A stretch of 64,000 nucleotides of DNA, taken from the NCBI GenBank assembly GCA_035221665.1, contig CM069160.1:15314001-15378000 (forward strand), written 5' to 3'. Source of the DNA: Okamejei kenojei. Taxonomy: Eukaryota. The notes under the pieces were generated by a model. That model searched no databases. It saw nothing but the letters and a program-made list of their open reading frames with translations, and was not told the origin of the DNA. Of this stretch, positions 1 to 43,776 are shown one piece after another (position 1 is the stretch's first letter; each line of letters starts with the position of its first letter). A program made the position numbers and the translations under genes.

Positions 1-521
1 ATCTACGCACCAAAGATCCCATAGCGGAGCAATGATACTAGTGCGGAGATGGAAGCTGGTTACGGAAACATCCTCATAAAAATCAAAGATCTTTGGTAAA
101 AATCTTCTCCTCATTTTCTTTCTGCCTCTCTGCCTCACAATAAAAAGCAAAAAGGTGCGTATGTTCTTTCCACAGCGTCTGGGAAGTCTGGCCGGGATCA
201 GCATGGCTGGGATGCCAGGCTAAAGTTGCGGGGAGAATTGCAATGTATTTTTAACAGAATTATAATTTATTAACATATTAATCATTAACCAAAATATAAC
301 AATTATGAATTGACAAAATTATGAATTATGAATCTAACCATATATCACACCTACAAACTGTTCCCCCGCAATGCTGATTACACTGCGAGAGGGACATACA
401 AAGTCGGGTCGAGTTACTGAAATGGCCGAAGAAATGGCCCACGTTCAGCTCCATTGCGTACTACTCGTCAGCCCATTGGATTTAACAGGAGTGGACTATT
501 TTGCTCACTACAGGATCTTTG
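1..521. mobile_element. Same MITE, cut by the window edge
   Basis: TIR at 489-521, an extra internal TIR copy at 11-38, followed by TSD cttggga. Confidence 0.65.
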
Positions 522-1192
522 CTTGGGACTGTGTGACCCTCTGGAGAGTCTCTGCTTGAGCGAGGCCTAGAGGGTACAGTTGAACTGTAATTGCGCTTTG
601 TTAAAATAAAGATTAGTTGTTCAAGTGCCTGATTCAGTGTTTCTGACTGAAACTAGACTGGGGAGAAGCCTAGAACGAACAATTTACATGGTGACACATC
701 ATGTTAATACGATGTTAATAGAGACATTTAACAAGTGCTTAACAGTGACACCCCCACTGTCTTGTGGAAAGCGGAGATTTTAATTTTTTTTCACCGAAAT
801 TCAAAATCCAGATTACAAAACATGGGGGGGGATTGTCCCCCACCTCTCAAAACATGGGGGGGAGGGGGGGGGGGGGGGGGGGGGGACGCCCTCCAGGATT
901 TCATGCCTTCCTACACTGTAGATGCAACATGCCTTTGGATGTCGTTGCCTGAGGAAATACCTTGTTTTTAATCGACTAGTTTTATGGATCAGTCACATGT
1001 CTCTCTCACTCGATTTGATTGATTGAAGGATACAACATGGAAATCTAGTGACCATAAATACGGGCATTTGATAATAGTGTCTCATTCACTCACTCATTCA
1101 CTCACTCACTCATTTATTTTTTAACTTCTGTCGCGGGCTGTGGGTCTGATTTGCCCTCCCGCTGCCCTAGAGATAGCGGAGTGGTCACTTAC

Positions 1193-1522
1193 CGTTCACC
1201 GTGAGAAACGTCCCTGTCCCACATGCCTCGCTCATCATGGTTTTCACCTGACAGACATACAGACCGGAATCGTTAATCCGCACGTTATTCAATTGTATAG
1301 AAACGTCCATGTCTGTAGACGGTGCATCCGGCGCTTTGACACGACCTCTGTATTCTCCGGTATAATTGGAAACAGACATCCCGTTTGTGGCTCCCTTGAA
1401 CCAATTGTAGGCCCATATGTGATCCGTGGCGTTGTGACTACACGGGAGAATCACCGTGTCACCTTCAGTGGCCACAATGGTGGACGTGTCCTGAATGACC
1501 ACGATCTTCTCAGCGACAACAC
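1193..1522 (-). CDS. NCR3: V2 exon: second VJ-type Ig V domain (tandem duplicate of V1)
   Basis: 330 nt, phase 1-1, open frame, same splice sites as V1; translation GVVAEKIVVIQ...LPCSHNATDHIWAYNWFKG...DSGLYVCQV...CGTGTFLTVN. Confidence 0.85.
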
Positions 1523-2705
1523 CTGCGGGCGGCAAGCAAAGTCTACTTGGTACTTGGGACCCGCTGGTTACACGGTCCCTCACGGGCCCGACCAGAGACG
1601 TTGCCTGTCCATGTTCTCCAGAGATGCTCACTGGCCCGCTGAGCTACTCCAGCACTTTGTGTCCTCTTGTGTACAGTCACAGAGTGGCACCGCGTGGAAA
1701 CAGCCCCCCCCCCCCCCACCACCCCCCCCCCCAGCCCAACTTGCCCACACCGACCAACAATAGACAACAGGTGCAGGAGTAGGCCATTCGGCCCTTCGTA
1801 CCAATACCGCCATTCAATGTGATCATGGCTGATCATCCCCAATCAGTACCCAGTTCCTGCCTTCTCCCCATATCCCCTGACTCCGCTATCTTTAAGAGCC
1901 CTATCTAGCTCTCTCTTGAAAGCATCCAGAGAACCTGCCTCCACCTGCCTCCACCTCTGAGGCAGAGAATTCCACAGACTGAGGAAGAGAATTCCACATC
2001 CAACTTGCCGCATCTACACTATGTGACCCTCTGGAGTGTCTCTGCTTGAGCGAGGCCCAGAGGGCTTGATCAGGCAGATAGGAGGATCTAACCCGCGGTG
2101 GGATAGGTACAGTGGTTGAACTGTAATTGCGCTTCGTTAAAATAAAGATTAGTTGTTCAAGTGCTTGATTCAGTGTTTCTGACTGAAACTAGACTGGGGG
2201 GAAGCCTAGAACGAACAATTTACATGATGACACAGCATGATAATACGATGTTAATAAGACATTTAACAAGTGCTTAACAGTGACACCCCCACTGTCTTGT
2301 GGAAGCGGAGATTTTAATTTTTTTTTCACCGAAATTCAAAATCCAGATTACAAAACATGGGGGGGGGGGGGGGGAATGTCCCCCACCTCTCAAAACATGG
2401 GAGGGACGGGGGACACACACGCCCTCCAGGATTTCATGCCTTCCTACACTGTAGATGCGACATGCCTTTGGATGTGGTTGCCTGAGGAAATACCTTGTTT
2501 TTAATCGACTAGTTTTATGGATCAGTCACATGTCTTTCTCAGTCGATTTGATTGATTGAAGGATACAGCATGGAAATCTAGTGACCATAAATACGGGCAT
2601 TTGATAATAGCGTCTCATTCACTCACTCACTCATTTATTTTTTAACTTCTGTCGCGGGCTGATTCGCCCTCCCGCTGCCCTGGAGATAGCGGAGTGGTCA
2701 CTTAC

Positions 2706-3044
2706 CGTTCACAGTGAGATACGTCCCTGTCCCACATGCCTCGCTCGTCATAGTTTTCACCTGACAGACGTACAGACCGGAATCGTTAATCCGCACGTTA
2801 TTCAATTGCATAGAAGCGTCCATGTCTGTAGACGGTGCATCAGGCACTTTGAGTCTGAATACACGACCTCTGTATTCTCCGGTATAATTGGAAACAGACA
2901 TCCCGTTTGTGGCTCCCTTGAACCAACGGTTGGCCGATATGTGATCCGTGGCGTTGTGACTACACGGGAGAATCACCGTGTCACCTTCAGTGGCCGCAAT
3001 GGGGGACGGGTCCTGAATGACTGCGATCTTCTCAGCGACAACAC
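2706..3044 (-). CDS. NCR3: V1 exon: germline-joined VJ-type Ig V domain, NKp30/NCR3-like
   Basis: Boundaries ccgcAG|GT...aacg|GTAAGT, 339 nt, phase 1-1. Has B-strand Cys (LPCSHNA), C-strand Trp (WFKG), EYRGRV, DSGLYVC and a J-like GTGTYLTV in the same exon. The pattern resembles NKp30 (LPCSFNA, EFRGRL, GNGTRLVV). Confidence 0.85.
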
Positions 3045-3469
3045 CTGCGGGCGGCAAGCAAAGTCTACTTGGTACTTGGGACCCGCTGGTTACACGGTCC
3101 CTCACGGGCCCGACCAGAGACGTTGCCTGTCCATGTTCTCCCGAGATGCTGACCGGCCCGCTGAGCTACTCCAGCACTTTGTGTCCTCTTGTGTACAGTC
3201 ACAGAGTGACACAGCGTGGAAACAGCCTCCCCCCCCCCAGCCCAACTTGCCCACACCGACCAACAATAGACAATAGGTGCAGGAGAACCTATTTAAGAGC
3301 CCTATCTAGCTCTCTCTTGAAAGCATCCAGAGAACCTGCCTCCACCGCCCTCTGAGGCAGAGAATTCCACAGACTGAGGAAGAGAATTCCACATCCAACT
3401 TGCCGCATCTACACTAGTCCCACCTGGCCCATATCCCTACAAACCTATCCTGTCTATGTACCTGTCCAA

Positions 3470-3766
3470 GGCAGGTACAAAATGCTGGGGTAACTCTGCA
3501 GGACAGGCAGCATCTCTGGAGAGAAGGAATGGGCAACGTTTCGGGTCGAGACCCTTCTTCAGACTGGTGCCAGGGGAGGGGCCGGGACAGAGATAGAATG
3601 TAGTCGGAGGCAGTCAGACTGGTGGGACAACTGGGAAGGGGAGGGGATGGAGAGAGAGAAAGCAAGAGCTATCTGAAGTTAGAGAAGTCAATGTTCATAC
3701 CGCGGGGGTTTAAATTGCCCAAGCGAAATATGAAGGTGCTGCTCTTCCAATTTGCACTGGGCCACT
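3470..3766 (-). mobile_element. Penelope-derived short repeat with hammerhead-like core
   Basis: Minus strand agtCTGAAGAagggtctcgacccGAAACGTTgccc. Related fragments lie at 1590-1660, 3110-3180, 8285-8575, 26790-26870, 42545-42730, 47820-48055 and 50725-50825. Confidence 0.55.
3535..3562 (-). ncRNA. Putative minimal type I hammerhead ribozyme core
   Basis: CUGAAGA - stem II gggtc/gaccc - GAAAC-GUU; stem I is weak. Confidence 0.4.
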
Positions 3767-4330
3767 ATAGAAAATAGACAATAGACAATAGGTGCAGGAG
3801 TAGGCCATTCGGCCCTTCGAGCCAGCAACGCCATTCAACGTGATCATGGCTGATCATCCCCAATCAGTACCCCCTTCCTGTCTTCACCCCATATCCCCTG
3901 ACTCCGCTATCTTTAAGAGCCCTATCTAGCTCTCTCATGAAAGTATCCAGAGAACCGGCCTCCACCGCCCTCTGAGGCAGAGAATTCCACAGACTCACTA
4001 CTCTGTGAGAAAAAGTGTTTCCTCGTCTCCGTTCTAAATGGCTTATCCCTTATTCTTAAACTGTGTGGCCCCTGGTTCTGGACTACCCCAACATCGGGAA
4101 CATGTTTCCTGCCTCTAGCGTGTCCAAACCCTTAACAATCATAGATGTTTCAATTAGATATCCTCTCATCCGTCTAAACTCCAGAGTGTACAAGCCCAGC
4201 CGCTCCATTTCTCAGCATATGACAGTCCCGCCATCACGGGAATTAACCTTGTGAACCTATGCTATACTCCCTCAAATTAGGGGACCAAAACTGCACACAA
4301 TACTCCAGGGACCAAATACTGCACACAAGG
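3766..4330 (-). mobile_element. CR1 (HER1-like) LINE 3' fragment
   Basis: Typical CR1 3' end with (aatagac) tail repeats and gtaggccattcggcccttcga. Shorter copies at 1757-1980 and 3264-3375. Confidence 0.8.
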
Positions 4331-4494
4331 GGCGAAACCAATTTAGCCCAATGTACGGGATGTCCCGGCTAATACGGGACAGTTGGCAAAACGCTATTGC
4401 CACCCCACGCCTCCTCGCCACCCCTCACCACCTCCCCCCTCCTTCCCCTCTCTACCCAAGAGCGACCCCATTGAGAAACAGAAATCCAACTCAC

Positions 4495-4540
4495 CCGCGG
4501 CCACAGACAGGATCCACACAATGGCGCCTGGCCCCACCAT
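4495..4540 (-). CDS. NCR3: Leader (signal peptide) exon of NKp30/NCR3-like receptor
   Basis: Minus strand reads ccagtgATGgtggggccaggcgccattgtgtggatcctgtctgtggccgcgg|GTGAGT = MVGPGAIVWILSVAAG. It is 46 nt, has a good Kozak context and a consensus phase-1 donor. It splices in frame to the V exons to give MVGPGAIVWILSVAAGVVA/EKI. The symbol is a family-level assignment; orthology is not proven. Confidence 0.8.
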
Positions 4541-4789
4541 CACTGGATAAACCACACAGGGAAAATGGAAATTCAGCGACCAGCTCCTAAGCCCATCCCC
4601 CCCACCCCCCCACCCCTTCCCTCATCCACCATGGATTGAATTGCCATTAATTCAGCGTGCAAAAGAGCTGGGGGTGATGGAATTGTCGGCCATTTCATTC
4701 TCCGTACACCCAAACCACTCTCCACTGAGGCTAGTCGCGGCCCTCGTAAAAAACAATCAAAGTGCGCCAGATTGAATTAAGATATTCCA

Positions 4790-5030
4790 CGGGTTCCCTC
4801 CGACTGAAGAACGACCGCGGTTTGGGACCGCGTGGCTTTTTCTCCGGGATCTCCGGGATCTCCGGTTTCCGCCCACACTCCAAAGACCCATCGGTTCGTG
4901 GGTTAATTGGCTTGTGAGAAATGCACACTGTCCCCAGTGTGTGTGTAGGGTAGTGTTGGTGTGCGGGGAATCGCTGGTCGGCGCGGCCTCGAAGGGCCTG
5001 TTTCCGAGTTGTATGTCTGAACTAAACTTG
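4790..5030 (+). mobile_element. HE1-type V-SINE fragment
   Basis: V-domain core ctccggtttcc.cccacactccaaagac and CR1-like tail. Confidence 0.7.
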
Positions 5031-5149
5031 GGTTTTGTAATCGCTACCGGCCTGTCCAAAGCGGCCATTCACGGTCAGGGATCGGGCAGTCGATGCATTA
5101 GCCCATGTCGACGGACTGGCCCTTTCCAAGAGTATTTCGTTTAAAATGT

Positions 5150-7295
5150 TTTATTTATTATTATTGTTTTTTGTTAGAAGCATTGTACATACATTTTAAT
5201 CAAGATATGCAACATAATACATTTCGTGTACAACTTCTCTTTTTTTTTAAATTTTATACACTTTAACCTATAATAGAAAAAAAAGAGAAAGCAGAGAAGA
5301 ATGAGAATAGTGGTGAAGTGTAGTCCGCAGCGGTTGGCGTTAGATGAATGATGATGGTCAAGCAGACTGCGTGCTTGAGAATGTGAACAACAGAAAGAAA
5401 AGAAAGAAAAAAGAAAAAAAAACAAGGCCCCAAAGAGAAGAGGGCCTTAAGAAGGGAAAGGAAATAAGTAAAACATCCAAAGAAGGTAGAGCTAAAGAAA
5501 AAAGAAAGGGAATGTGCCTAACTCATTACCATTCACACCCATCACCTAGTTCTTAAACAATAACTTACTAGGGTTATGCTGCACCATATTATACTTCTAA
5601 CAAATCAATAAAAGGTGACCATATTCTTAAGGATTGTTCTTGTTTTCCTGCTAGAACGAGTCTCATTTCCTCGAGATGTAATATTTCCGACATATTTGTG
5701 ATCCACATTTTAAACGTTGGGATAGGAGCGTTTTTTCCAGAATTTAAGCATATGATTTTTTTGCCGTTATTCAACCATAGTTTAGGAAACATCTTTGAAA
5801 TATGGTTAGTTCAGAGCAGGCTTCCCTTGCTCCGAAGATAATTAATTCTGTGTTTGGGTCCAGTCTTAATTTAAATATTTTTGAAAAGCTTTCAAAAATG
5901 TCCTTCCAAAAATTCTGAAGTTTTGCACAGGGAACAAATGAGTGTGCTATTGTTGCCTCGTTAGTTAGGCACTTATCACAGAAGGGAGAGACTTTGGAAA
6001 TATTTTATTTAGTTTTGTTTTTGAGTAATATAATCTGTGTACAATTTTAAATTGGATCAGTGTATGTCTAACGTTATTCGAACATTTATATACATATGAC
6101 ATATAGTCTTCCCATCTGTCCTTGGGAATTTCTATAGCCAATTCTTGATCCCAATTCTTTTCTTATACCTTCTGTCGAAGGTATATCTATATTTAGAATA
6201 GTATTATAAAAATATGATGTTAAATGATCCAATTCTACTTGTCTATTCATGCCTTGCTCTAGAAGATCCAACTTCAAATTTTGATCATCTGGTGAGTGTT
6301 TTTTCACATAATCTCGGGTTTGTAAGTATCTAAAATATTGATTGTTTTCCAAATTGTATTTAAGCTGTAAGTCTTGGAATTGTAAACATTTTCCCTCTTC
6401 ATACAAATCTTCCCAAGTCTTAATTCCTAATCGTTCCCAGAGCGTGAACGTTTTGTCAATAGTCGATGGCTCAAACGCCGGGTTGTTAGCTGTCGATGAG
6501 AGAAGCGAAAGATTTCTTAATTTAAGGGAGGATTTTATTTGTCTCCAAATTCGTATTGTGCTGTGAATCATCGGGTTTCTCTTATATATTGTGCTCTTCA
6601 ATTTTATTGAGCAGAAAAGAATCGCTCCTATGTTAAAAGGAATGCAATCCTCCTTCTCCATTATTGTCCATTCTGCCTGTTGTGATGAACTATCCAACCA
6701 GTACATTATATTTTTAATGTTCACTGCCCAATAGTAGTACGTAAAATTGGGAAGTGTGTCCACCATATTCATAAATGTCTTCTTTGAATTCTATGGGATT
6801 TATAGTCCCACATGAAATTTGTAATGTATGAGTCAATTTTTTTAAATGAGTTTTTAAAGTATATATGTAGGTATTGCTTGGAATCAATAGAGTATTTGTG
6901 GAAGAAAAATCATTCTAATGGCATTTATTCTGCCTATTAAGGACATCGGTAGTGTTTTCCAAAATTGGATCGATGTTTGTAATTTAGTAAGTAAGGGCAG
7001 ATAATTTGCGTTAAATAGAGATTTATATTTTCTAGTAATTTGAAAACCCAAGCATTTAAATCTTTCTGTAGTAATTCTAAAAGGGTATTTTAAAAGATGT
7101 GTTTTATCGTCATTATTTCGCTTTTATTCCAATTTATTCTATATCCTGAAAAGGAACCAAATTCTTCTATTAAGTTTAATAGATTTGGTATGCTAATTTG
7201 TGATTTTGTAATATATAATAATACATCATCTGCATATAATGATATTTTATTATTAGAGTTTTATGTATTGTAACCGTGAATATTGGGGTGCATTC
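5150..7295 (-). mobile_element. L1-clade LINE, 5'-truncated (ORF2 C-terminal half, 3' UTR, A-rich tail); inverted copy at ~33560-35812
   Basis: ORF 6086-6772 has LPNFTYYYWA and QYFRYLQTRDY, typical of fish L1 ORF2; Cys/His C-terminal region downstream. Confidence 0.85.
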
Positions 7296-7302
7296 TAGAG
7301 TA

Positions 7303-7629
7303 TTTAGTTTGTTTTTAGTTTGAGAGATACAGCGCGGAAACAGGCCCTCGGCCCACCACCTCGCACACCTCGCACACCAACACTATCCTACACACACGAT
7401 CACCCCGCACACCAGCACTCTAAGGTCGATTTACAATTTTTACCAAAGCCAATTAACCTACAAATCTCTACGTCTTAGGAGTGTGTGGGGGGGAAACCGG
7501 GGCACCCGGAGTAAACCCATGCGGGTCACTGGGAGAACGAGCAAACTCCGTACAGACAGCGCCCGTGGTCAGGATTGAACCCGGGTCTGTGGCGCCGTGA
7601 GGCGGCAACTCTACCGCTGCGCCACCGTG
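7303..7629 (-). mobile_element. HE1-type tRNA-derived V-SINE, full length; inverted copy at ~33220-33550
   Basis: A box tggcgcagcgg, B box ggttcaatcc, V core and (aaact)n tail. Confidence 0.85.
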
Positions 7630-8024
7630 TCTCGCATAAAGATTCCCGGCATCTGCAGTCTTTTGTGTCTCCGAGATACAGCCACACAATGAATACAGTA
7701 CAGATGTCATTCTAAAGTCTACCTTTGTTAGAGTTGTGAGTCTTTCTCCCCTGCAGCGATCAAGCCTTGCTGGATGTACCTTGTATCTCCTGGTCGCGGC
7801 TCAAATCCGTCTCCTTTGTAGATGCCAACTGACTTTGCGTCCTCTCTCCAGCCTCCCCCCTCTCTCTCTCTCCATCCAATCTCACATCACACAACACGAG
7901 CGGGCTTGTAGGTTAATTGTCCCTGCTGTAAAATTGCCCCCGAGTGAGAAGATAGTGGTCGAGAAAGCGGGATAACACGAGGGACCTGTTTCCACGCTGT
8001 ATCTCTCAACTGAACTAGGAAGCG

Positions 8025-8088
8025 CTCTCTCGCTCTCTCTCCCTCTCTCTCTCTCTCTCTCACTCTCTCTCTCTCTCTCCCTCTCTCT
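8025..8088. repeat. (CT)n microsatellite
   Basis: Seen directly. Confidence 0.9.
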
Positions 8089-8394
8089 GACCGCCTGTAC
8101 AACAATAAGTAGACTTCGTGCGCTTGGGTCGCGGTTTGAGGAACCAGCACTGGCTCTATTTCCATGTCAGCGTGAACAGATCAGGCCGAGCGCGCTAGCG
8201 AGCAGCCGAAGTCAGAAGTGGCTATTTCTGATCTTTAAGCGAGAGTATTATTAGAGCGATATATAGCGCGGAAACAGGGCCACGGTAGACACAGGGTGCT
8301 GGAGTAACTCGGCGGCTCTTCAGTGTAAGTCAGCATCTGCAGTTCCTTCCTTCACATAAAGAATTGCAGATGCTGGTTTATACAAAAGATAGAC

Positions 8395-10379: not shown

Positions 10380-13343
10380 AAATAGTAAGATTAAACCGAG
10401 GAGTAACGATGAGGGATTACCCCCGCCTGGTGCTGGACACGGCATACCACAAGCAGCGGCATGAAAAACACAGACATAATAGCCAGTAAGAAGTAAGGCT
10501 CAACATAGATTTAGAACTACCAGACATTTATTTTATGAGGGTCGGGTCGTGGAGGGCACAATCCCTCATCGTTACTCCTCATAAATAAACGATCAAACTT
10601 CGACTGGTAAGTTCTTGTTTAATCTTTACTATTTTACTTCGGAGTCACGTGACACTACGTAAGATTTTGAAGCGTTTCACGACATACGACACTCTGTCAT
10701 TCAACACAGAATGAGCAAAATACACACATTTTTTCCCCAAACATTGCCTCAAGTTATGGAGATAAATTATTTCACATAATTAAAAGATGTAATGACCTCA
10801 CACACAAATATCAATTGATATATATAATTTGATGGTATGAACAAAGCAACAATTATAGAGAACCCAACACTCCGTGGAATCACACACCATGACTGGTTCC
10901 ATTTAATTTAATATTTATTTTACACCCTCCTGCGGCCTTGAATCTTTGCTCGAGCGGCTCATCCTGTGCCATTCCTGTGAAGTATTCACCTCCTTAACAG
11001 AGTGATTTTCCACATTTTCACTTTCCACTGAGTGTTATTCAATTTTTAACCAGCTAGAATACATTTCTCTAGAACATCAGTTTTTTACTGAACTAATGTG
11101 TTTTTTTTTTTATTGTGATAAGTAGTGCTGTCTCATCACCACAGAGACTCTTACACACATATCATCGATGTTCACACACACACACAATTTAAGGCCGACA
11201 GGATATGCTTATAGGGTTTACCTTGGTTTCAGCTCGGGCTTGGTCTGCTTTGTTTGGTAAATTATAACATATATGATAATGTAATCTGTATCCATATACA
11301 ATTATAACATAATATTTGCAGTGTTTGCACTCTTATATGATACAGCATTATTTCTTTCAATGTTAACTTTTTTTGAATCATTGATAGAATTGGCCATTGC
11401 AAAGCAATTCAGGACTATATTGATCTCCAGACATGTATTGAATTTTGGACACATATATATACATATATTTATATTCTACACATATATCCCTTTTCATTCA
11501 TATTACAAGAACCCATAATTTTCTTGGTTAGTATATTGTCCGTAAATAGGACGATAAACACTGGAAGCGAGCCCATTATTGGCATCAATTAGATACTCGA
11601 GAAAATGCAATGCACAAGGAACTCACATATATCTAAGATGACAAATAACACTGTATACAGACTTCAATTTCTTATAAAAATATTGTTTTTTTAAACTTAT
11701 TTCTGCAAATTGCAGTATAAAACTTCTTTATACCATAAATTATTTTATTGTTATGATGTTATATTATTTATTTAAACATTTCATAGACTTCTGTTGACCA
11801 TCAAACTGTTGTAACAACCTGCAGATAGTCACATATTTTCATGTCATGGATGCACTTTGTACAACAATAAATTACACACTATGAATCATCACAAGTGGTT
11901 CACACATCACTCAATATTTATGAAAACCATGATGATCCGTTTGGGCCACCAACAATGCCTCCGGCAGTGTCCTGCTACATTTTCATCAGACACTGCCCTA
12001 TCAGACAAAAATGAGGAACACACACATTTTTCCTCATGGAGAGAAACAGCATCCACCTTTCCTGTTCTTGGTTTACCCACGAGAACATTTGAAAGATCTT
12101 CTGTGATTTAATCTGTATACCAGATTAAACGTAGTATTCCATATTAATGACAATGTATTTTCCCCCTTAATTTGTTGTCTCCGATCACATTGTCTCTTCT
12201 TAGAGATAACAGCTGGACTAAAACACATAGAATATGCCACATACTGTTTACTCCAGGCCCATGATATTATTTTACGCTTATATGTGAGCCACACTCTCTC
12301 TGGTATTGTTCACCTTGATATGGACATGGACACTTCATAATAGAACAATCATATTTAATCCTCTCTTATACTTTAATAATTAATACAAAGGATTTGAGAA
12401 ATTTCTTAGGACAATCCATCAATTACCTGGTATTATTGTCAAGTCCCAACAAGAGACGTCAATCATTTTTATAGAAATAGAATTGAAATATGCCATTCTT
12501 ACCCAAATATTCACAGAAGCTGTACCATCATCTGTTAATATGGCTTCAGCTTGCAATAGTGCCTGCATATACAGCCCTTGTGAAAATCCCTTTTTTTTCC
12601 AGTTTTCTTTTTTATCCATTACTTTATAATGGGGTATTTGCATAAGCCTCTCACAAAGGCATTCACAATTCTTATAAAGCTTGTTTTCCTCTTTTGGAGC
12701 TTTATTTACTCTTTTCCTAAATGGCACTCCTTTTCTAATGGAGGGACAAAGTCTGTCAACAAAGCAATGAGACATATTTGTTCATGGAACAATTTTCCCA
12801 TCTCTTATGGTGCTGAATTTCTCCTAAATAAAGAATATAATTTATGACATTTTTGCATGCCTAACAACATAGGCTTTATGTGATGGGTCAGGTCCTTGCC
12901 TTTCAACAGGCTTGTAATTGCAGCACTAATTTGCAGCTGACTCTTTATAACTTCCAATTTAAATGTGATCAAGATAAACCCATGACCACCTCATTAATGC
13001 AAGTGTTGATCTTTTATCAGTACAATTGTTCTTCCAGTAAAACAAGCCTTGAAACTGGTTTTTATCCTTTAGACAATGTTTTAACTTGCACCGCTTGACC
13101 CATTTTAATAAATTTCAAGCACCTGTAATATTTGATTAACACTTTGTTAATAACAACTGTATTTCAATGTTGAAGATGTTTCCATTTTAATAAATTGTTC
13201 TTACACTGTGAAAGTGTATATAAAATGATGTTTTGTATGGTTTATACCATCAAATCCTTACACTGAGGTAATTTTATAATATATATATATATGTACGTAC
13301 CCCTTCTTTATTGGAGTTACTTTTGGGTGCAAACCTAAAATCA
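10380..13343 (-). mobile_element. DIRS1-like element, copy 1 (5'-truncated, damaged right terminus)
   Basis: Reverse-complement homologue of 18955-22180 with different flanks; ICR at ~10557-10665; deletions in the right end. Confidence 0.85.
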
Positions 13344-13414
13344 ATTAGGAGACCAAAACTGTGCAAAATACTCCAGATGTGGTCTCACCAGAGCCCAATA
13401 CAACTGCAAGTCGT

Positions 13415-13790
13415 TTTACCTTTATTTTAGTTTGTTTTTGTGTCCAGTTTGTGCGTTTACCATGGCGTCAGCAGTTCACAAACCAGAGCCTTTGGTGTTT
13501 GATGGCGACATCGCCAAGCGATGGGACATCTTTGATGAAGATTTCACTGTGTATGTGCATGCGTTGCACGCTGTAGTCGCTCCGGATGTTCGTGCCTCTA
13601 TTCTCCTTCACCTGGCAGGCACAGAGGCTGCTCGATGTGCCAGAAGATTTCATGATCAACCGGCCCAGTTCAATGCTGCTGATGTCCAGATTGTTCCGGC
13701 GGAATCCATTCAAGACCCTGAATGCCTGCCTCATCAGGTTCCAACAGCTATGGAGTTACGCATTCATCTTGTAATGGAGCGCGCCATGCA
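13415..13790 (+). mobile_element. Gypsy-type LTR retrotransposon gag N-terminal fragment; inverted copy at ~63270-63640
   Basis: MASAVHKPEPLVFDGDIAKRWDIFDEDF...ILLHLAGTEA resembles the P-L-F-G-N..W..F..LLH..G gag N-terminus. Confidence 0.6.
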
Positions 13791-13814
13791 ATTCATTCGG
13801 ACCAACCGGAGAAA

Positions 13815-13936
13815 AAACCCACGTGGGTCACGGGAGAAACGTACAAACTCCGCACAGACAGCTCCAGTGGTCAGGATTGAACCAGGATCTCCGGCGCTGT
13901 GAGGCAGCAACTCTACCGCTGCGCCACCGTGCCGCC
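13815..13936 (-). mobile_element. HE1-type SINE 5' part; inverted copy at 63116-63242
   Basis: A and B boxes plus start of the V core. Confidence 0.75.
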
Positions 13937-14121
13937 CTTAGGTTGACGTTGAGAGGGTCAACAAGTAACAGGAACCTGAAGGGCAACTTTATTCACACAT
14001 AGAATGGTGGGTGAGTGGAACAAGCTGCCAGAGGAGGTAGGTGAGGCAAGTCATAAGTGATAGGAGCAGAATTAGGCCATTCGGCCCATCTAGTCTACTC
14101 TGCCATTCAATCACGGCTGAT

Positions 14122-14404
14122 CACGGTGGGGCAGCGGTAGAGTTGCTGCCTCATAGCGCCGGACACCCGGGTTCGATCCCGATTACGGATGCTGTCTGTA
14201 CGGAGTTTGTACGTTCTCCCTGTGCTCTGCGAGTGTTTTCTCCGAGATCTTCGGGTTCCTCCCGCACTCCAAAGCCGTACAGATCTGTAGGTTAATTGGC
14301 TTGGTAAATGTGAAAATTGTCCCAAGTGGGTGTAGGGTGGTGTTAGTGTGGGGGGATCGCTGGTCGGCGCGGACCCGGTGGGCCGAAGGGCCTATTTCTG
14401 CGCT
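14122..14404 (+). mobile_element. HE1-type V-SINE; inverted copy at 62615-62929
   Basis: cacggtggggcagcggtagagttgctgcc...ggttcgatcc, V core and tail. Confidence 0.85.
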
Positions 14405-14989
14405 NNNNNNNNNNNNNNNNNNNNNNNNNNNNNNNNNNNNNNNNNNNNNNNNNNNNNNNNNNNNNNNNNNNNNNNNNNNNNNNNNNNNNNNNNNNNNNNN
14501 NNNNNNNNNNNNNNNNNNNNNNNNNNNNNNNNNNNNNNNNNNNNNNNNNNNNNNNNNNNNNNNNNNNNNNNNNNNNNNNNNNNNNNNNNNNNNNNNNNNN
14601 NNNNNNNNNNNNNNNNNNNNNNNNNNNNNNNNNNNNNNNNNNNNNNNNNNNNNNNNNNNNNNNNNNNNNNNNNNNNNNNNNNNNNNNNNNNNNNNNNNNN
14701 NNNNNNNNNNNNNNNNNNNNNNNNNNNNNNNNNNNNNNNNNNNNNNNNNNNNNNNNNNNNNNNNNNNNNNNNNNNNNNNNNNNNNNNNNNNNNNNNNNNN
14801 NNNNNNNNNNNNNNNNNNNNNNNNNNNNNNNNNNNNNNNNNNNNNNNNNNNNNNNNNNNNTAGGCAGCGTTCAACGTTCATGCCAATGACGTCACACATA
14901 TGTTCCCGAATCACATTTACATTAAAAAACTCAATTTTAATCAAATTCTTGAGGTTACATTTACAAAAATCATCGTGATTTTCATTGTG

Positions 14990-15400
14990 GGGGGGCGGGG
15001 GGAGGGGTTGGGGATATGGGGGAGGGGAGGAGGGGGGGGGCAGGGGCATTACAGGAAAGAGGAGGGGTTAGGGAGGGTAGAGCGGTTATGGAGGGAGGGA
15101 GTGACTGAGGGTAGGGGAGAAGGAGAGGGAGGGAGAGGTGAGGGAGGGAGTGGAGGAGGAGAGAAGAGGGGAAAGAAGAGGGAGGATGGGAGAGCTGGGG
15201 GATGAGGGGGGAATGGAGGAGGATTAGGGGTGGGAAAGGGGATTGGTGAGGTAATGGAGGAGGAGGATGGGGAAGAGGGGGGAGGGGAGGGTGGGGGTGA
15301 GGGGAGGAAGCATAGGAGGGTTGGTGGAGGGTGGGGAGAAGGGGGATAATGGAGGACTAGAGGACTGAAGAGGGAGAGTGTGATGCATTGGGGTGGATGA
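14990..15400 (+). repeat. Polypurine G-rich low-complexity tract; complement at 61430-61860
   Basis: Many GGG/GGA runs; G-quadruplex or triplex potential is inferred. Confidence 0.8.
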
Positions 15401-15431
15401 TTGCAACTTTCATGTGGTCCACCCTGTTCCG

Positions 15432-17248
15432 ACTGCTTGCTGCCTAATTGTTTGCCTCGCCTTTTTTAAAAAAAGTTTCTGTTCACAAAATAAATTTTGG
15501 TTGTCAGGTGGCTGTTTGCTGCACAATTGTTTGCCTCGCCTTTAAAAAAAAAAGTTTGTGTTCACAAAATGGATTTTGGTTGTCAGGTGGCTGCTTGCTG
15601 CCCAATTGTTTACCTCTCCTATTTTTCCAAATGTTTGTGTTCACAAAATGGATTTTGGTTGTCAGGTGGCTGCTTGCTGCCCAATTGTTTGTCTCGCCTT
15701 TTTAAAAAAAAGAGTTTGTGTTCACAAAATGAATTTTGGTTGTCAGGTGGCTGCTTGCTGCCCAATTGTTTTCCTTGCCTTTTTAAAAAAGAGTTTGTGT
15801 TCACAAAATGAATGTTGGTTGTCAGATGGCTGCTTGCTACCCAATTGTTTGACTCGCCTTTCTTTAAAAAAGTTTGTGTTCACAAAATGGATTTTGGTTG
15901 TCAGGTCGCTGTGGCCCAATTGTTTGCCTCGCCTTTTTGAAGAGTTTGTGTTCATAAAATGGATTTTGGTTGTCAGGTGACTGCGGCCCAATTGTTATGC
16001 CTCGCCTTTTTGAAGCGTTTGTGTTCACAAAATGGATTTGGTTGTCAGGTGGCTGCAGCACCCTCCCTTTTTAAATTTGTGTTGCACTCCTTGTTGCCCT
16101 CGCCTTTTTAAAAGCATGTGTCACTAAATGAATTTTTGGTTGTCACCAAATGAGGTTTGTGTTCACAAAAAAAAAAAAGGTTTGGATTTACGGGCCCAAT
16201 TATTTGCCTCACATTTCTTTTAACCAGTAGGTGGTCTGGCTGCTTGCTGCCCAATTGTTTGCCTTTTTTAAAGGAGTTGTGTTCACAAAATGGATTTGGG
16301 ATGGTAGGTGGCTGCTTGTTGCCCAATTGTTTGCCTCGCCTTTTTAAAAAGCATGTGTTCACAAAATGGATTTTGGTTGTCAGGTGGCTGCTTGCTGCAC
16401 AATTGTTTGCCTTGCCTTTTTAAAAAAAAAAAGTTTGTGTTCACAAAATGAATTTTAGGCTGTCAGGTGGCTACTTGCTGCCCAATTATTTGCCTCACAT
16501 TTCTTTTAACCAGTTCGAATTCACAAAATGAATTTTGTTTGTCAGGTGGCTGCTTGCTGCCCAATTGTTTGCCTCGCCTTTATAAAAAAAAGTTTTTGTT
16601 CACAAAATAAATTTTGGTGGTCAGGTGGTTGCTTGCTGCCCAATTGTTTGCCTTGCCTTAAAAAAAAAAAAGTTTGTGTTCACAAAATGGATTTTGGTTG
16701 TCAGGTGGCTGCTTGCTGCCCAATTGTTTGCCTCGCCTATTTAAAAAAGGTTTTCTGTTCACAAAATAAATTTTGGTTGTCAGGTGGCTGCTTGCTGCCC
16801 AATTGTTTGCCTCGCCTTTTTTTAAAAAAAAGTTTTCTGTTCAAAAAATTAATTTTGGTTGTCAGGTGGCTGCTTGCTGCACAATTGTTTGCCTCGCCTT
16901 TAAAAAAAAAAAGATTGTGTTCACCAAATGAATTTTGGTTGTCAGGTGACTGCTTGCTGCTCAATGTTTGCTTTGCCTATTTAAAAAAAAGTTTGTGTTT
17001 ACAAAAAAGGATTTGGGTTGGTAGGTGGCTGCTTGCTGAACAATTGTTTGCCTTGCCTTTAAAAAAAAAGTTTGTCATCACAAAATGAATTTTGGCTGTC
17101 AGGTGGCTGCTTGCTGCCCAATTGTTTACCTCGCCTTTTTTTCCAAAAGTTTGTGTTCACAATATGGATTTTGGTTGTCAGGTAGCTGTTTGCTTCCCAA
17201 TTGTTTGCCTCACCTTTTTAAAAAAAGAGTTTGTGTTCACAAAATTAA
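15432..17248 (+). repeat. 73-79-bp tandem satellite, left part
   Basis: Unit agtttgtgttcacaaaatggattttggttgtcaggtggctgcttgctgcccaattgtttgcctcgcctttttaaaaaa. Confidence 0.95.
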
Positions 17249-20200
17249 TTTTACTTCGGAGTCACGTGAGTGACTACGTGAAGAAGCCCCGCCTGGCGCT
17301 GGAACAGCATTACGTCGACGCTGACAGCAGAGCAAGAGCTGCAGAGTCAGCTCCTCGACAGCGGTAGGTACGGGCCCGCAGGTAAGTGCAGTGGAAAACA
17401 TTTTCCGTGGCTGGTATTGAATACCAGAATTTAAAACTAATTTAAAAGTAAAAAATAAGTAAAAGTTAAAATAAAAGGAAAATACTTTATATGAAAAACA
17501 ACGGAGTTTAAAAGAACGTCCTAAGGGGAGCGATCGGAACGGGAGATTACGGAGCCGGTTCCGATACCGGTGGCCGTCAAAATTACGTTAGAAAGATTTT
17601 TTAGTCGCTCCACAAACTTTTGCGCTTGGGGGGTGGGGGGGGGAAATTTTTAAAGTCAGAAAGGCCATAATTTAAAATTCAATAAAAGGCCTTCAGACTA
17701 AAAAAGCTTTATGGCTTGAAAAATTAATGGAAAAAAGATTCAAAAAATAAAAATAAAGTAAATAAAGAATTCAAGCCAAAAAATGGGTAAAGGCCCAAAA
17801 CAATTTCCTAACCTACCCCATAAAAGGGATTTCATATATTCTAATATATATGATGAAATATGGTGGGAATATCTACCTCATACTATTTGAAGGTAGTCTC
17901 CTTGAGGAAAAAAAATCAGGGAGTAACAAGGGCAGTAAAAATAAAATGGAAAACTGACCTTAAAAATGCACTGATAGTGGTGGCTGGTCATGAAGTACCC
18001 ACCACAGCTCCAGTAATATATATATATATATATAGTACAGGTGTACAACACCTGAATAAGAAGTGAGGCCATGGAAAATAACCATGGAAAACAAAATTAA
18101 TTGGTCTCTCACTAAAGCTGTTATGATTAAAACAGCAGAATAATATTAAAACTTTTTATGTTTTATTTAAGTACACTTCAGCACCAAATATATATAGAAG
18201 TGTACTAGGTTTGATACCTGAATGTATGAGTGAGGCCATGAAAAGTAAATATGGAAAAAAAAAAATAATTGGCCTCACCTAAAGCTGTTATGGTGAAACA
18301 GCAGAATATGATAAAACTTTTAAGTTTATAAAGATATCAACGGTGAATCCGGTATGATATCCATGTCTCAATTAGATGGAGATATAAGGAAATACGATTT
18401 TAAAAGTATTACAAACTGGTGCATGGTCATTTCCATTCAATGGAAAACAAATAAAATATTGTGCAAATAACCAATACATTTGAAGTAAAATTAATTGCCA
18501 TCAGTTTGTGGAGCTCAATGGAAGAAATATATAATATTTGGGACAAATTGCATCTAGATTTGCTGATCAATACAAATCAGGTTATGTTAAACTCTGATTA
18601 TTATGGAATAAAACTGCCTTATGATTATTCAAAATATTGATTACAAAAGAACAGATTATTGGTCTTTAAACTTTGGGGGGGGGGGGGGGGGAATTATTGA
18701 TCCAATGTAAAGATTTGATATTGGATCAAAACAAAGGCAGAAGTATGATAAATAAAACATATCAAACATAGCCTTATCCATATAATTGGAAAAAAAAAAG
18801 GCTTGAAGTAGGTTGAAGGGGTTGCAAACAAACTGTTACAAAATAAATTCATGAAATCTACGATTGTGGGGGATTACAGCTGTATTAAAACTAGGGACTA
18901 CAAAAAAATTGTAGAAAGGGATTGGTCACCTGTATAAGAAACCTTTAAAAATCTGATTTTAGATTTGCATCCAAAAGTAACTCCAATAAAGAAGGGGTAC
19001 GTACATATATATATATAATATATAAATAAAATTACCTCAGTGTATAAAGTTGTGATGGTATACCATACAAATATCATTGATATACACTTTCACAGTGTAA
19101 GAAACATTTTTATTAAAATGGAAAATCTTCAACATTGAAATGCAGTTGTTATCAAACAAGTGTTAATCAAATTATTACAGGTGCTTGAAATTAATTAAAA
19201 TGGGTCAAGCGGTTGCAAGTTAAAAACATTATCTAAAAAGGATTAAAACCAGTTCAAGGCCGTTAAACCAGAATACTGGAAGAAATATTGTACTGATAAA
19301 AGATCAACACTTGCATAATGAGGACATGGTCATGGTTTATCTTGATCACATTTAAATTGGAGGTTATAAAGAGTCAGCTGCAATTTAGTGCTGCCAATTA
19401 CAAGCCTGTTGAAAGGCAAGGACCCTGACCCATCACATAAAGCCTATGTTTTAGGCATTGCATAATATTCACAAATTAATATTCTGGTTTTAGGAGTAAT
19501 TCAGCACCATAAGAGATGGGAATTGTTCCATGATACAAATATGTCTCATTGCTTTGTTGACATATTTTGTCCCTCCATTAGAAAGGGCCTAGGTAAAAGA
19601 AATAAAGCTCCAAAAGGAGGAATACAAGAGCTTATAAGAATATGTATGCCTTTGTGAGAGGCTTATGCAAATACCAAATGATACATTATCATTATTAAAG
19701 TAATGGAAAAAAAAGGGGTTCACAAGCTGCTTCAACTATTAGCTATGCACGCTGTTGCAAGCTGAAGCAAGTATTAACAGATGATGGACAGCTTCTGTGT
19801 TATTTGGGTAAGATAAGAATATTATCTATTCTTATAAAAATAATTGATACGTCTCTTGTTGGGGACTATGGACAATTAATACCATGTAATTGCAAATGTA
19901 TTGTCCTAGAAAGAAATTTCTCCAAATATTTGTATTAATTATTTTGAAGTATAAGGAGTTATGGATTAAATATTGATTGTTCTATTATGGAAGTGTCCAT
20001 GTATATCAAGGTGAACAATACCACGGCAGTGGCATATATTAAATCACATAAGATAAGTAAAATAATAATCATGGGGTTATTGAGTAAACAGATGTGGCAT
20101 ATTCTAAAATGTTTAGTCCAGCTGTTTATCTCTAAGAAGAGACAATGTTATCGGAGACAAAAACAAATTAAGGGGGGGAAACTACATTGTCATTAATATG

Positions 20201-22180
20201 GATTACTTACGACAAAAATTAATCTGGTTGTATACAGATTAAATCACCGATCTTTCAAATGTTCTCGTGGGTAAACCAAGAACATGAAAGGTGGATGCTT
20301 TTCTCTCAATTAATGAGGAAAAATGTTCTTTTATGTTCCTCATTTTTGTTGATAGGGCAGTGTCTGATGAAAATGTAGCAGGACACTGCCAGAGGCATTT
20401 TGGTGACCAAAACGGATCTTCATGGTTTTCATAAATATTGAGTGATGTTGAACCACTTGTGAGCTGATTCATAGTTGCAGTAATTTATTGTTGTACAAAG
20501 GATCCATGACATGAAAATATGAATTGACTATCTGCAGGTTGACCAGACTATTATAACAGTTTGATGGTCAATGAAGTCTATGAATGTTTAAACTAATATA
20601 AAACATAACAATAAAATAATTATGTGTAAAGAAGTTGTTATACTGCAATTTTGCAGAAATAAGTTTTTTAAAAAAAAATAATTAAAAAAAAAAAGAAATT
20701 GGAAGTCTGTGTATACAGTAAAGTTATTTGTCATATTAGATATATGTGAGTTCCTTGTGGATTGCATTTTTTTCTGAGTATCTAATTGATAGAGCCAATA
20801 ATAGGGCTCAGAGTGTTTATCGTCCTATTTACGGACAATATACTAATCAAGAAATTATCGGGTTCATTCGTAATATCCCGATATGAAAAGGGATATATAT
20901 GTAGATATAAATATATATATATAATTCTGTCCCAAAATTGCAATACATTGTCTGGAGATCCTATATAGTCCTGAATTGCCTTAGGCAATGGACTCCAATT
21001 CTATTAATGATTCAAAAAAGTTAACTTTGAAAGTAATAATGCTGATGACTTTTTATCAATATAAGAGTGCAAACATTGCAAATATTACGTTATAATTGTA
21101 TATGGATACAGATTACATTATCATATATGTTTATGAATTTACCAAAAACAAAGCAGACCAAGAAGAGCTGAAACCAAGGTAAACCTATAAGCATATCCTG
21201 TCGGTCTTAAATTATGTGTGTGTGTGAACATTGATGAAATATGTTGAAGTAAGTAAGTAAGTCTCTGTGGTGATGAGACGCACTACTTATTACACACAAT
21301 ACACAATACATTACACACAATACAATTAAAACACATTAGGTTTCAGTAAAAACTGATGGTTCTAGAGAAATGTATTCTAGATGGTTAAAAATTGAATAAC
21401 ACTCAGTGGAACTAGACACTGAAATGTGGAAAATCACTCTGTTAAAGAGGTAGATACATTCACAGGAATGGCACAGGATGAGCGCACGAGCAAAGATGCA
21501 AGGCCACAGGAGGGTGTAAAATAAATATTAAATCAAATTGAACCAGTCATGGTGTCAGGATTGGACACAGAGTGTTGGGTTCTCTATAATCGTTGCTTTG
21601 TTCATACCATCAAATTATATATATCAATTGCTATATTTTGTGATTAAACCTGCCTTTCATTGGAAAGGGCATACTTTTATTCTTTATAACGTGATTAATT
21701 TTATCACATAACTTGAGGCAATGTTTTGGGGGAAAAAATAGGTGTTATTTTGCTCATTACTGTGTTGAATGAGCCGGGACTGTCGTATGGAACAAATTCT
21801 ACGACATAAAAAACACAGAAAGCTTCAAAATCTTCACGTAGTCACTCACGTGACTCTGAAGTAAAATAGTAAGATTTTAAACGAGAAATCTTACCAGTTC
21901 GAGTTTGATCGTTATTTTTTGAGGAGTAACGATGAGGGGATTACGTGCCCTCCATCCCGACCTCATAAAATAATTGATCATCTGGTAGTTCTAAATCTAT
22001 GTTGAGCCTTACTATCTTACTCCGGCTATTATGTTGTGTGTATTTCATTGCCGCTGTGCTTTGAAAGTATGCCGTTCAGCGCCAGGCGGGGCTTCTTCAC
22101 GTAATCCCTCATCGTTACTCCTCATTAAAATAACGATCAAACTTTGAACTGGTAAGTTCTCGTTTTAATCTTACTATTTT
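17249..22180 (+). mobile_element. DIRS1-like tyrosine-recombinase retrotransposon, copy 2: complete termini, decayed ORFs
   Basis: ITRs at ~17275-17310 and ~22069-22102. ICR 21831-21947 is complementary first to the left end, then to the right end, joined through AAAA. Flanked by tttt. Remnants: RT (KME ~19155; MVYLDH 19332-19349), RNase H (NNTTAVAYI ~20014), methyltransferase-like region (~20240-20400), YR (RVQTL ~21068, KQT ~21151, HSVK ~21435). Confidence 0.9.
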
Positions 22181-25100: not shown

Positions 25101-25947
25101 TTTTAAAATAAATGCTGTGTTCACAAAATGAGTTTTTGTTGTCAGGTGGCTGCTTGCTGCTCAATTGTTTGCCTCGCCTTTTTTAAAAAATGTTTGTGTT
25201 CATAAAATGAATTTTGGTTGACAGGTGTTGCTTGCAGCCCAAATGATTGGCTCGCCTTTTTGAAGAGTTTGTGTTCTCAAAATGGATTTTGGTTGGCAGG
25301 CGGCTGCGGCCCAATTGTTTCCCTCGCTTTTTTAAAGAGTTTGTGTTCACAAAATGGATTTTGATTGTCAGGTGGCTGCGGCCCAATTGTTTGCCTTGCC
25401 TTTTTAAAGAGTTTGTGCTCACAAAATGGATTTTGGTTGTCAGGTGGCTGCGGGCCAATAGTTTGCCTCGCCTTTTTTAAAAGTTTGTATTCACAAAATG
25501 GATTATGGTTGTCATTTGGCTGCCTGCTGCCCAATTGTTGCCTCGCCTTTTTAAAGAGTTTGTGTTCACAAAATGGATTTTGGTTGGCAGGTGGCTAGGG
25601 CCCAATTGTTGCCCTTGAGTTTTTAAAGAGTTTTTTTTGTTTTTTTTTCTTTACAAAATGGATTTAGGTTGTCAGGTGGCTGCGGCAAAACTGTTTGGCT
25701 CGCCTTTTTAAAACGGTTGCGTTCACAAAATGGATTTTGGTTGTCATTTGGCTGCTTGCTGCCCAAATGTTAGCCTCGCATTTAAAAAAAAATGTTGTGT
25801 TCACAAAATAAATTTTAGTTGTCAGGTTATTGCTTGCACCCAATTGTTTGCTCCACCTTTTTGAAGAGTTTGTGTATGCCCCCAAATATGGATTTTGGTT
25901 GTCTGGTGGCTGCGGCCCAAATTGTTTGCCTTGCCTTGGCTTTTAAA
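22181..25947 (+). repeat. 73-79-bp tandem satellite, right part
   Basis: Same unit, with a shorter gctgcggcccaattg variant; resumes exactly in register after the DIRS element. Confidence 0.95.
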
Positions 25948-26355
25948 TTCATGCAACAGTTGGCTTCCAGCATTCGGCCCGCAACACCATTCTAGCGCAA
26001 CAGAAAGCCCCCCCCCCCCCCCCCCCCCCCCTCCCCCCCCAACCTGGCAGCAATATTGGAATTGGTGGAAGGTGGAATATTGCGTTGGTGACCATTCTCC
26101 CCGTGTGATGATGCTGGGACCCAATGGGTTTCCACTTAGTTGGTTGATCATATATTTTACAGGTTATTTGCCATTTTGAACTTTGAAAACGTCGCAATTC
26201 GCGCTTAACACACTTGCCAGCCGCACCTGCCACAGTTGGGGGAGCGTTGCCGTGACTCAGTCACATGTGACCTGCGCAGTTGTGGGCTATGGCCCCGTCA
26301 GTGGTGGATATTGCATTGGGGGACGGGGCCCACACGGGTCCACAACTTGGTCAAG

Positions 26356-26670
26356 CCCACTCTGTCCAAGCCTTTTCACTATTCGGTACGTTTCAATGGG
26401 GTTCCCCCCTCTCCCTCATTCTTCTAAACTCCAGCGAGTACAGGCCCAGTGCCGTCAAACGAGAAGATGAGGAGGAATTTGCTTCAACCAGAGGGTGGTG
26501 AATCTGCTGAAAACGGAGATTGACAGGTTTTTGATTAGTAAAGGAGTCAGAGGTTACGGGGAGCAGGCAGGAGAAATGGGGTTGAGAGGGAACGAGAGAT
26601 GGTAGTGATTGAACAGCGGAATAGACTCGATGGGCTGAATGGCCAAATTCTGCTCCATGACTTAAGAACT
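26356..26670. mobile_element. Rearranged CR1 fragment (inverted 5' piece + 3' end); inverted copy at 56955-57259
   Basis: Minus-strand CR1 coding piece joined at ~26461 to a plus-strand CR1 3' end. Confidence 0.6.
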
Positions 26671-31951: not shown

Positions 31952-32451
31952 NNNNNNNNNNNNNNNNNNNNNNNNNNNNNNNNNNNNNNNNNNNNNNNNN
32001 NNNNNNNNNNNNNNNNNNNNNNNNNNNNNNNNNNNNNNNNNNNNNNNNNNNNNNNNNNNNNNNNNNNNNNNNNNNNNNNNNNNNNNNNNNNNNNNNNNNN
32101 NNNNNNNNNNNNNNNNNNNNNNNNNNNNNNNNNNNNNNNNNNNNNNNNNNNNNNNNNNNNNNNNNNNNNNNNNNNNNNNNNNNNNNNNNNNNNNNNNNNN
32201 NNNNNNNNNNNNNNNNNNNNNNNNNNNNNNNNNNNNNNNNNNNNNNNNNNNNNNNNNNNNNNNNNNNNNNNNNNNNNNNNNNNNNNNNNNNNNNNNNNNN
32301 NNNNNNNNNNNNNNNNNNNNNNNNNNNNNNNNNNNNNNNNNNNNNNNNNNNNNNNNNNNNNNNNNNNNNNNNNNNNNNNNNNNNNNNNNNNNNNNNNNNN
32401 NNNNNNNNNNNNNNNNNNNNNNNNNNNNNNNNNNNNNNNNNNNNNNNNNNN
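31952..32451. other. Scaffold gap of exactly 500 N (other gaps: 9911-10039, 14405-14860, 62077-62347, 62396-62614)
   Basis: Counted directly; the round size suggests an arbitrary join between contigs. Confidence 0.9.
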
Positions 32452-36390: not shown

Positions 36391-36442
36391 ATGATTGGTG
36401 GGCCCGGCGCCATTTGTGTGATCCTGTCTGTGGGGCCGCGGG
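36391..36442 (+). pseudogene. Leader exon, second gene copy (indel-damaged or mis-sequenced)
   Basis: Reverse-complement match to 4495-4540 (atgattggtgggcccggcgccatttgtgtgatcctgtctgtgggg) with indels. Confidence 0.55.
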
Positions 36443-43630: not shown

Positions 43631-43776
43631 GACTTTCTTTTCTTTCTTAAACGAGAAGGAATGGGTGGATGATTTGAACGTTGAACAAAGAAACAGCGTT
43701 GAGTTTACTCCACGTTTAGAGTGTTTATCTTCGTCCACCAGCGGGCATGATGCTCTGCTTCATATCTATTTCGCAA

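Follow-up and report, generated by a model that had tools for sequence, protein, structure and literature searches.

Does a receptor gene with several non-rearranging V exons encode its V domains in series, or does it choose among them by splicing? The question is raised by an NCR3/NKp30-like locus in a 64,000-nucleotide (nt) stretch of the skate Okamejei kenojei genome (GCA_035221665.1, contig CM069160.1, positions 15,314,001 to 15,378,000; hereafter the window). The initial annotation of the locus proposed a three-V receptor in which isoform diversity would arise by exon choice rather than by RAG.

We conclude that the product of the locus is probably a type I membrane receptor belonging to the NCR3 family of elasmobranchs, with non-rearranging VJ-type V domains of one exon each. 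In such a receptor, a split leader would be followed by two membrane-distal V domains (VA), one or perhaps two membrane-proximal V domains (VB) and a transmembrane (TM) segment. The VA pair arose by recent tandem duplication of an exon together with its splice sites, the leader being excluded, and serial inclusion would yield the mature layout VA-VA-VB-TM, as in annotated models from Mobula and Hemitrygon.

Leader and V exons

The gene lies on the minus strand, and all exon coordinates given here are window positions. Beginning at an ATG, the leader exon (4540-4495; 46 nt, phase 1) codes for MVGPGAIVWILSVAA, and its last base opens a Gly codon. Its 3' end reads GCGG and is followed by the donor G/GTGAGT (the slash marks the exon end). 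The open reading frame (ORF) track had overlooked this exon. However, the leader peptide can be aligned at the same offset to the N termini of the batoid homologs P0003, P0160 and P0159 (GAIVWILSVAA versus GAILWLLTVSS), and the exon is therefore considered real, as initially proposed.

Two open VJ-type V exons, both of phase 1-1 and on the minus strand, follow the leader. VA1 (3044-2706, 339 nt) and VA2 (1522-1193, 330 nt) correspond to V1 and V2 of the initial annotation, and the VB-type exon discussed below corresponds to its V3. The splice signals of VA1 and VA2 are identical (acceptor ...gcccgcag, donor AACG/GTAAGT). Their peptides start with (G)VVAEK and end with GTGT(Y/F)LTVN(G), the J-like motif being GTGTYLTV in VA1 and GTGTFLTV in VA2. 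The interval 1193-4540, which had been singled out as the gene, begins and ends exactly on exon ends. Both exons matched the Pfam V-set (E 5e-11 for VA1 and 5.6e-11 for VA2), and the residues that are invariant in the family were all present in both (C27, W40, R60, D87, Y91, C93 and the G-x-G-T motif). The description of two open V exons, each with its own J-like motif and donor, thus held.

In both VA exons, a Cys codon (1223-1225 and 2736-2738, minus strand) precedes the J-like motif (SEACGTGT), where nearly all relatives have a Tyr (EEYGAGT). This residue is predicted to be an unpaired cysteine of the FG loop, and it could form an interchain disulfide.

Assignment to the NCR3/NKp30 family

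Database searches and folding were done exon by exon. A phmmer search of the PDB placed human NKp30 (NCR3) at the top (E 1e-9), with antibody V domains barely behind. When a profile of the window exons and eleven relatives was used instead, NKp30 was matched with an E value of 6e-26 and 94.7 bits, compared to 70 bits for SIRP-alpha. The AlphaFold model of VA1 had a predicted local distance difference test (pLDDT) score of 85.6, and its top Foldseek match was likewise NKp30 (3noi, 32-34% identity), with SIRP close behind.

An exhaustive HMMER protein search returned 830 matches. The single-V matches looked up among the best 150 of these were mostly named NCR3. Such NCR3-named single-V relatives included the nurse-shark proteins QTT61898 and QTT61904, which we take to be the NCR3 set of Kinlein et al. 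2021, as well as frog NCR3 and the NCR3-like proteins of lungfish and horn shark. No close skate protein was present among the protein-search matches. A word-index search of proteins, queried with the V exon, came back empty, as its length limits left out the relatives of 400-600 aa.

Judged by sequence matches, family profile and predicted fold, the locus is a member of the NCR3/NKp30 family, as had been proposed at the outset. The V-set domain is of the non-rearranging VJ type and is contained in one exon, with a germline J-like G-x-G-T-x-L-x-V motif and a donor, and its nearest relatives by both sequence and fold are NCR3 proteins. However, the locus does not share the single-V ectodomain of mammalian NKp30, as two VA exons occur in series and one or more VB exons lie downstream in the duplicate copy described below.

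Three other assignments were rejected. A SIRP gene is disfavored by the profile score, which is approximately 25 bits below that for NKp30, by the second rank in the fold comparison, and by the V-like nature of the downstream Ig exons, none of which is C1-set. A pIgR-like assignment is disfavored by the family-profile and fold matches, which favor NKp30. A germline-joined V gene of an Ig light chain or T-cell receptor (TCR) is disfavored because the top relatives are NCR3 rather than Ig or TCR, and because the next exon is another V. No genes of the major histocompatibility complex were visible in the window, which contains repeats and the NCR3-like gene.

Relatives with several V domains

The best matches of all were elasmobranch RefSeq models with several V domains. 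In Mobula hypostoma, these comprise XP_062903900 (P0003; VA-VB-TM-tail), LOC134346461 (P0159, 467 aa; leader-VA-VA-VB-TM-tail) and XP_062903898 (P0001), in which one VA is combined with four VB domains. The layout VA-VA-VB-TM was found in Hemitrygon akajei (P0161), VA-VA-VB... in a partial model from Mobula birostris (P0162), and VA-VB-TM-tail in Hypanus sabinus (P0160). Among sharks, three isoform models of Heterodontus francisci (P0002, P0151 and P0152) all have three V domains, and a Scyliorhinus canicula model (P0007) has two. P0003 is 52-56% identical to the window V exons, and the skate gene shares with the batoid multi-V models a homologous leader and VA-type distal domains. The cytoplasmic tails of orthologs carry motifs (IQYAVI/IHYAVI) that resemble the immunoreceptor tyrosine-based inhibitory motif (ITIM).

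A phylogeny of the individual domains placed the window V exons in the same tree as shark NCR3. VA1 and VA2 fell inside a batoid VA clade (support 100/97), on a long branch from the Myliobatiformes sequences that suits a skate origin; VB domains formed a separate clade (100/99). The proximal domains of the sharks (Heterodontus domain 3 and Scyliorhinus domain 2) paired together. As the shark proximal domains are paired and the VA and VB clades are separate, the layout of a distal plus a proximal V domain is old, with extra copies of one or the other exon arising lineage by lineage.

The three-V receptor that had been proposed therefore gains support from the leader-V-V-V-TM layouts of homologs in Mobula, Hemitrygon and Heterodontus. 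It is not a new design, however, as layouts with several V domains are already annotated in stingrays, manta rays and sharks, to which the skate locus adds another example. The names of the batoid relatives are automatic (pIgR-like, "uncharacterized" or SIRP-like). No study of them was found as far as checked, the contents of Kinlein et al. 2021 lying outside that check.

Tandem duplication of the VA exon

The two VA exons belong to direct repeats with a spacing of 1.52 kb and an identity of 90.5%. Unit 1 (573-1779) consists of VA2 with approximately 620 nt downstream and approximately 260 nt upstream, without a leader, and unit 2 (2106-3285) contains VA1. As the duplicated unit lacks a leader, the second VA exon is not a separate gene. 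The units differ by 48 substitutions, of which 28 (58%) are transitions, and their alignment contains 10 gaps, each 1-16 nt in length; this pattern of divergence looks biological.

The VA1 and VA2 proteins are 89% identical, with 13 residue differences and one 9-nt in-frame indel. The ratio of nonsynonymous to synonymous substitution rates (dN/dS) is 0.64, and the exons have diverged to the same extent (5.5%) as the flanking and intron sequence (5.4%). Given this equality, the VA copies are too young to reveal either constraint or its loss. In the domain tree, VA1 and VA2 are sisters (support 100/99), so the skate duplication either occurred independently of those in other batoids or has been homogenized. 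Overall, the VA duplication is recent and lineage specific, and the exon was copied with its splice sites but without the leader.

Serial inclusion or exon choice

The intron between VA1 and VA2 measures 1,183 nt, and both introns are GT-AG. As both VA exons are symmetric (phase 1-1), every combination of them is in frame, and serial inclusion is the default outcome. The initial annotation had suggested instead that the leader joins either VA1 or VA2, or that splicing omits one of the VA exons; V-V-V and V-V isoforms that differ in their distal domains would then provide regulated receptor diversity. The identical strong acceptors and donors of the two symmetric exons are compatible with such a scheme. 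Moreover, 3 of the 13 residue differences between VA1 and VA2 cluster at positions 36-39, in the region of complementarity-determining region 1 and the C strand, and one more lies in the FG loop. In each tandem unit, the V exon is also flanked, on the plus strand, by a downstream G run and an upstream C run (855-885, 1704-1733, 2358-2379 and 3229-3240). Those around VA2 (G at 855-885, C at 1704-1733) have a length of 30 nt and a complementarity of 90%, and folding of the pre-mRNA predicts that they pair and enclose the exon. Such pairing could favor skipping of VA2, but these are simple, repeat-borne tracts to which we attach little weight.

However, nothing in the gene enforces exclusivity, as the intron of 1,183 nt and the GT-AG sites allow double inclusion without a frameshift. 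Homologs with a duplicated VA (P0159, P0161, P0162 and P0002) carry both copies in series, and the three Heterodontus isoform models differ solely in the cytoplasmic tail. A divergence of approximately 5% is also young for an evolved selector system. A search for sequencing runs listed none confirmed as RNA. Two runs guessed to be RNA and two DNA runs gave short contigs with no splice joints over the gene, joints being confined to repeats, and this result neither supports nor refutes any splice form.

The argument for alternative leader splicing had rested on the shared GVVAEK start of VA1 and VA2. The shared start is indeed present, but it is not evidence for such splicing. In P0159, P0161 and P0162, the second VA starts with IGAEKFVVIQ, the same stretch that comes directly after the leader in the first domain, and the second domain of Heterodontus starts with SNAEKFTVIQ. 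As the homolog models keep the motif in copies that stand in series, an internal V with a leader-end motif is the normal footprint of whole-exon duplication. Exon choice as a source of diversity thus finds no support here, and we regard it as unlikely. A related conjecture is that the number of V domains in elasmobranch NCR3-like receptors (1 to 5) evolves quickly by tandem duplication of V exons, and that the young skate VA copy is alternatively included, perhaps helped by the G/C runs, yielding receptors that differ in distal V domain or in reach. This would be a speculative extension, and a somewhat less likely one still.

We favor inclusion of both VA exons in series. The distal V domains would bind ligand, and signaling would proceed through a tyrosine-motif tail, on the model of the ITIM-like motifs in orthologs.

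An inverted copy of poor sequence quality

An inverted, error-laden duplicate of window positions 1-8121 occupies 32704-41528 on the plus strand. It includes copies of the leader (approximately 36391-36442, plus strand), VA1 (approximately 38458-38805, plus strand) and VA2 (approximately 39992-40322, plus strand), the two V copies being interrupted by frameshifts and stops. The duplicate sits in a separate contig (32452-62076) that is bounded by runs of N (31952-32451 and 62077-62347). A comparison of the clean and inverted copies over 3.5 kb showed 154 gap openings, almost always of a single nucleotide, along with 156 substitutions, among which just 41 are transitions.

When the tandem units of both copies were placed in a four-way alignment, private substitutions numbered 6 and 12 in the clean units, compared to 99 and 95 in the inverted units. 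One-third of the latter are transitions, and each inverted unit has approximately 50 private indel columns. Paralogs of equal age cannot differ so much in rate, and the inverted copy is therefore considered raw-read-quality sequence with almost no true divergence. The stretch of such quality extends over 32452-47000, and especially 32704-41528, with approximately 4% 1-nt indels and approximately 8% random-looking substitutions relative to its clean twin; the noise is patchy and gone by 49.8 kb. ORF decay and "pseudogene" calls in 32452-47000 are suspect for the same reason.

The inverted copy most probably represents a redundant contig of this locus, or of its allele, that was left unpolished; otherwise, it would be a genuine inverted duplicate of very recent origin that polishing had missed. 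A second intact gene and an ordinary pseudogene were both rejected, as the asymmetry in private substitutions (95-99 versus 6-12), the one-third share of transitions and the approximately 4% of 1-nt indels fit sequencing error rather than evolution.

This disorder raises the possibility that the V-V tandem is itself an assembly artefact, with two diverged alleles or paralogs stacked in one contig. The window is indeed misassembled elsewhere, with the error-laden inverted duplicate and five N gaps. DNA contigs from other individuals (two DNA runs) also contained many variant bases in VA1 (e.g., at 2747, 2751, 2809, 2927 and 2936), and at some of these sites the window base was absent from them. 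Either VA1 is a highly polymorphic exon or close paralogs of it exist. However, 59 columns of the four-way alignment hold differences between units 1 and 2 that are common to the clean and inverted copies. Both units thus recur, in the same order and with their own diagnostic differences, in an independently assembled noisy contig, which argues that the tandem arrangement is physical. As the divergence between the units is biological-looking, with 58% transitions and long indels, and VA-VA duplications are present in other batoids, an artefact of this kind is highly improbable.

VB and TM exons

Further exons of the predicted receptor were found downstream of the duplicate. A VB-type membrane-proximal V exon (approximately 44884-45212, plus strand) is open in its first half, beyond which the frame is broken at least twice. 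Its identity to the second domain (VB) of the Mobula protein P0003 is 50% (E 3.5e-12), the match resuming in another frame at 45083-45214, and the exon ends with ...LEVNGT G/GTGAGT. An extra VB-like fragment lies approximately 1.1 kb upstream (approximately 43790-44060, plus strand); its reading frame is interrupted by a stop, and satellite-like sequence of the gtcaagtcatgtcaagtctagtc type takes the place of its 3' part. This short-unit satellite (44100-44560 and 45250-46040) flanks both VB-like exons.

The TM exon (approximately 48190-48301, plus strand) encodes IIKSATIRLRILALLVALEGCILLVIMLLVRQSRRDK and ends at a GTAAG donor, its 5' end being uncertain. The peptide aligns to the TM that directly follows the last V domain in P0003, P0159, P0160, P0161, P0002 and P0034. 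As read from this error-laden sequence, it has a mid-membrane Glu and two Arg residues near its start; the residue aligned with the Glu is Glu in Heterodontus and Gln in rays. The order VB then TM is that of the batoid models, but it was observed only in the noisy duplicate, where VB has frame breaks. The "second gene copy" with V3 and TM exons that had been described is thus correct insofar as both exons exist. However, the copy is a probable assembly duplicate, its V3 is frame-broken, and the extra VB-like fragment had been missed. Clean counterparts of VB and TM should lie 2-7 kb before the window start.

Evidence against a multi-V receptor at this locus

Several observations weigh against the receptor proposed here. 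The multi-V relatives in RefSeq are computed gene models, and VB and TM were seen only in frame-broken, low-quality sequence. A tblastn search with six homologs detected no cytoplasmic tail exons in the window, although short exons in noise would escape it. Constraint on both VA exons is not apparent from the dN/dS of 0.64 or from the equal exon and intron divergence, and one could be a new copy that is not used. The short contigs obtained from the two runs guessed to be RNA covered VA1 at approximately 94% identity, extending over 22 bases of intron, and left VA2 uncovered.

One VA exon, or the whole gene, could accordingly be a dead or unused duplicate, a neutral product of unequal crossing-over in a repeat-rich cluster that stays outside the mature mRNA. 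The dN/dS value with its matching divergences, the failure of protein searches to find a close skate protein and the lack of contigs over VA2 all fit this explanation. However, both exons have open frames that span 110 codons, their splice sites are intact, and all of the family-invariant residues listed above are kept in each. The sole exon indel is 9 nt long and in frame, whereas flanking indels range from 1 to 16 nt. A dead duplicate is therefore decidedly improbable, and a receptor that uses both VA exons remains our preferred interpretation.

Other features of the window

Two DIRS-like copies (10398-13343 and 18954-22123) form an inverted match of 82%, in which 3.2 kb of alignment contains 205 mismatches and 161 gap openings. 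They share the indel-rich pattern of the noisy duplicate, and their "decayed ORFs" and "shared lesions" may be partly sequence error. Further inverted matches (82-95%) connect 22194-31951 with 61389-50996 and 13055-17252 with 64000-59000. The latter half of the window resembles a circularly permuted version of the first half in inverted orientation, an arrangement that fits head-to-head scaffolding of redundant contigs from one repeat-rich locus. Satellite arrays with a period of approximately 72-79 bp occupy 15433-17252, 22176-25937 and 57680-61389, and they contain long spurious ORFs in several frames.

Significance and comparison with known systems

To our knowledge, NCR3/NKp30 is the one natural killer cell receptor that can be traced across jawed vertebrates, and the VJ exon of NCR3 has been discussed as a relic of a pre-RAG antigen-receptor ancestor. 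Family members from rays, skates and certain sharks have two to five VJ domains in a row, built up by repeated exon duplication, which illustrates how receptor architecture can be altered through the germline. The analysis also identifies misnamed RefSeq models (pIgR-like, turtle-like and SIRP-like) as NCR3 kin. The locus alone offers a modest gain, namely, a skate member of the family and a dated, apparently independent VA duplication, together with a warning that the neighboring "second copy" is probably an assembly artefact.

The SIRP family resembles the skate locus in its VJ-type distal V and was the second-best structural and profile match. It differs in that the skate V exons are followed by further V rather than C1-set exons, and its profile score is approximately 25 bits lower than that of NKp30.

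Mammalian NKp30 (PDB 3noi, 3pv6 and 6yjp) is the best match in sequence, profile and fold. Motifs common to NKp30 and the window exons include the CS-N-A-[ST] glycosylation site after the first Cys, VSN-x-T-x-E[YF]RGR, D-x-x-x-Y-x-C and G-x-G-T-x-L-x-V. The mammalian receptor has a single V domain and a short tail, and an arginine in its TM provides the coupling to CD3-zeta/FcR-gamma. In contrast, the skate locus has several V domains and a TM Glu (in the noisy copy only), and orthologs have long tails with tyrosine motifs.

The NCR3 family of sharks shares with the skate gene a non-rearranging VJ-type V exon, its character as a divergent multigene family in elasmobranchs and a place in the same domain tree. 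Nurse-shark NCR3 is the subject of Kinlein et al. 2021 (Immunogenetics 73:333), as cited in PMC12272517 and PMC12227049. Both nurse-shark proteins that were retrieved (213 and 170 aa) differ from the skate gene in having only one V domain.

The batoid multi-V models (P0159, P0161, P0003 and P0001) are the closest known system. They differ from the skate locus in three respects. The VA duplication in the window is independent or homogenized, both of its VA domains have a Cys just before G-x-G-T where the family has a Tyr, and tblastn found no tail in the window. The models share with the skate locus a homologous leader and distal VA domains (52-56% identity) and, as far as the noisy copy shows, a proximal VB domain and a homologous TM. 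Likewise, the internal copy of a duplicated VA retains the leader-end motif in both, and the number of V domains (2, 3 or 5 in the models) varies by tandem exon duplication.

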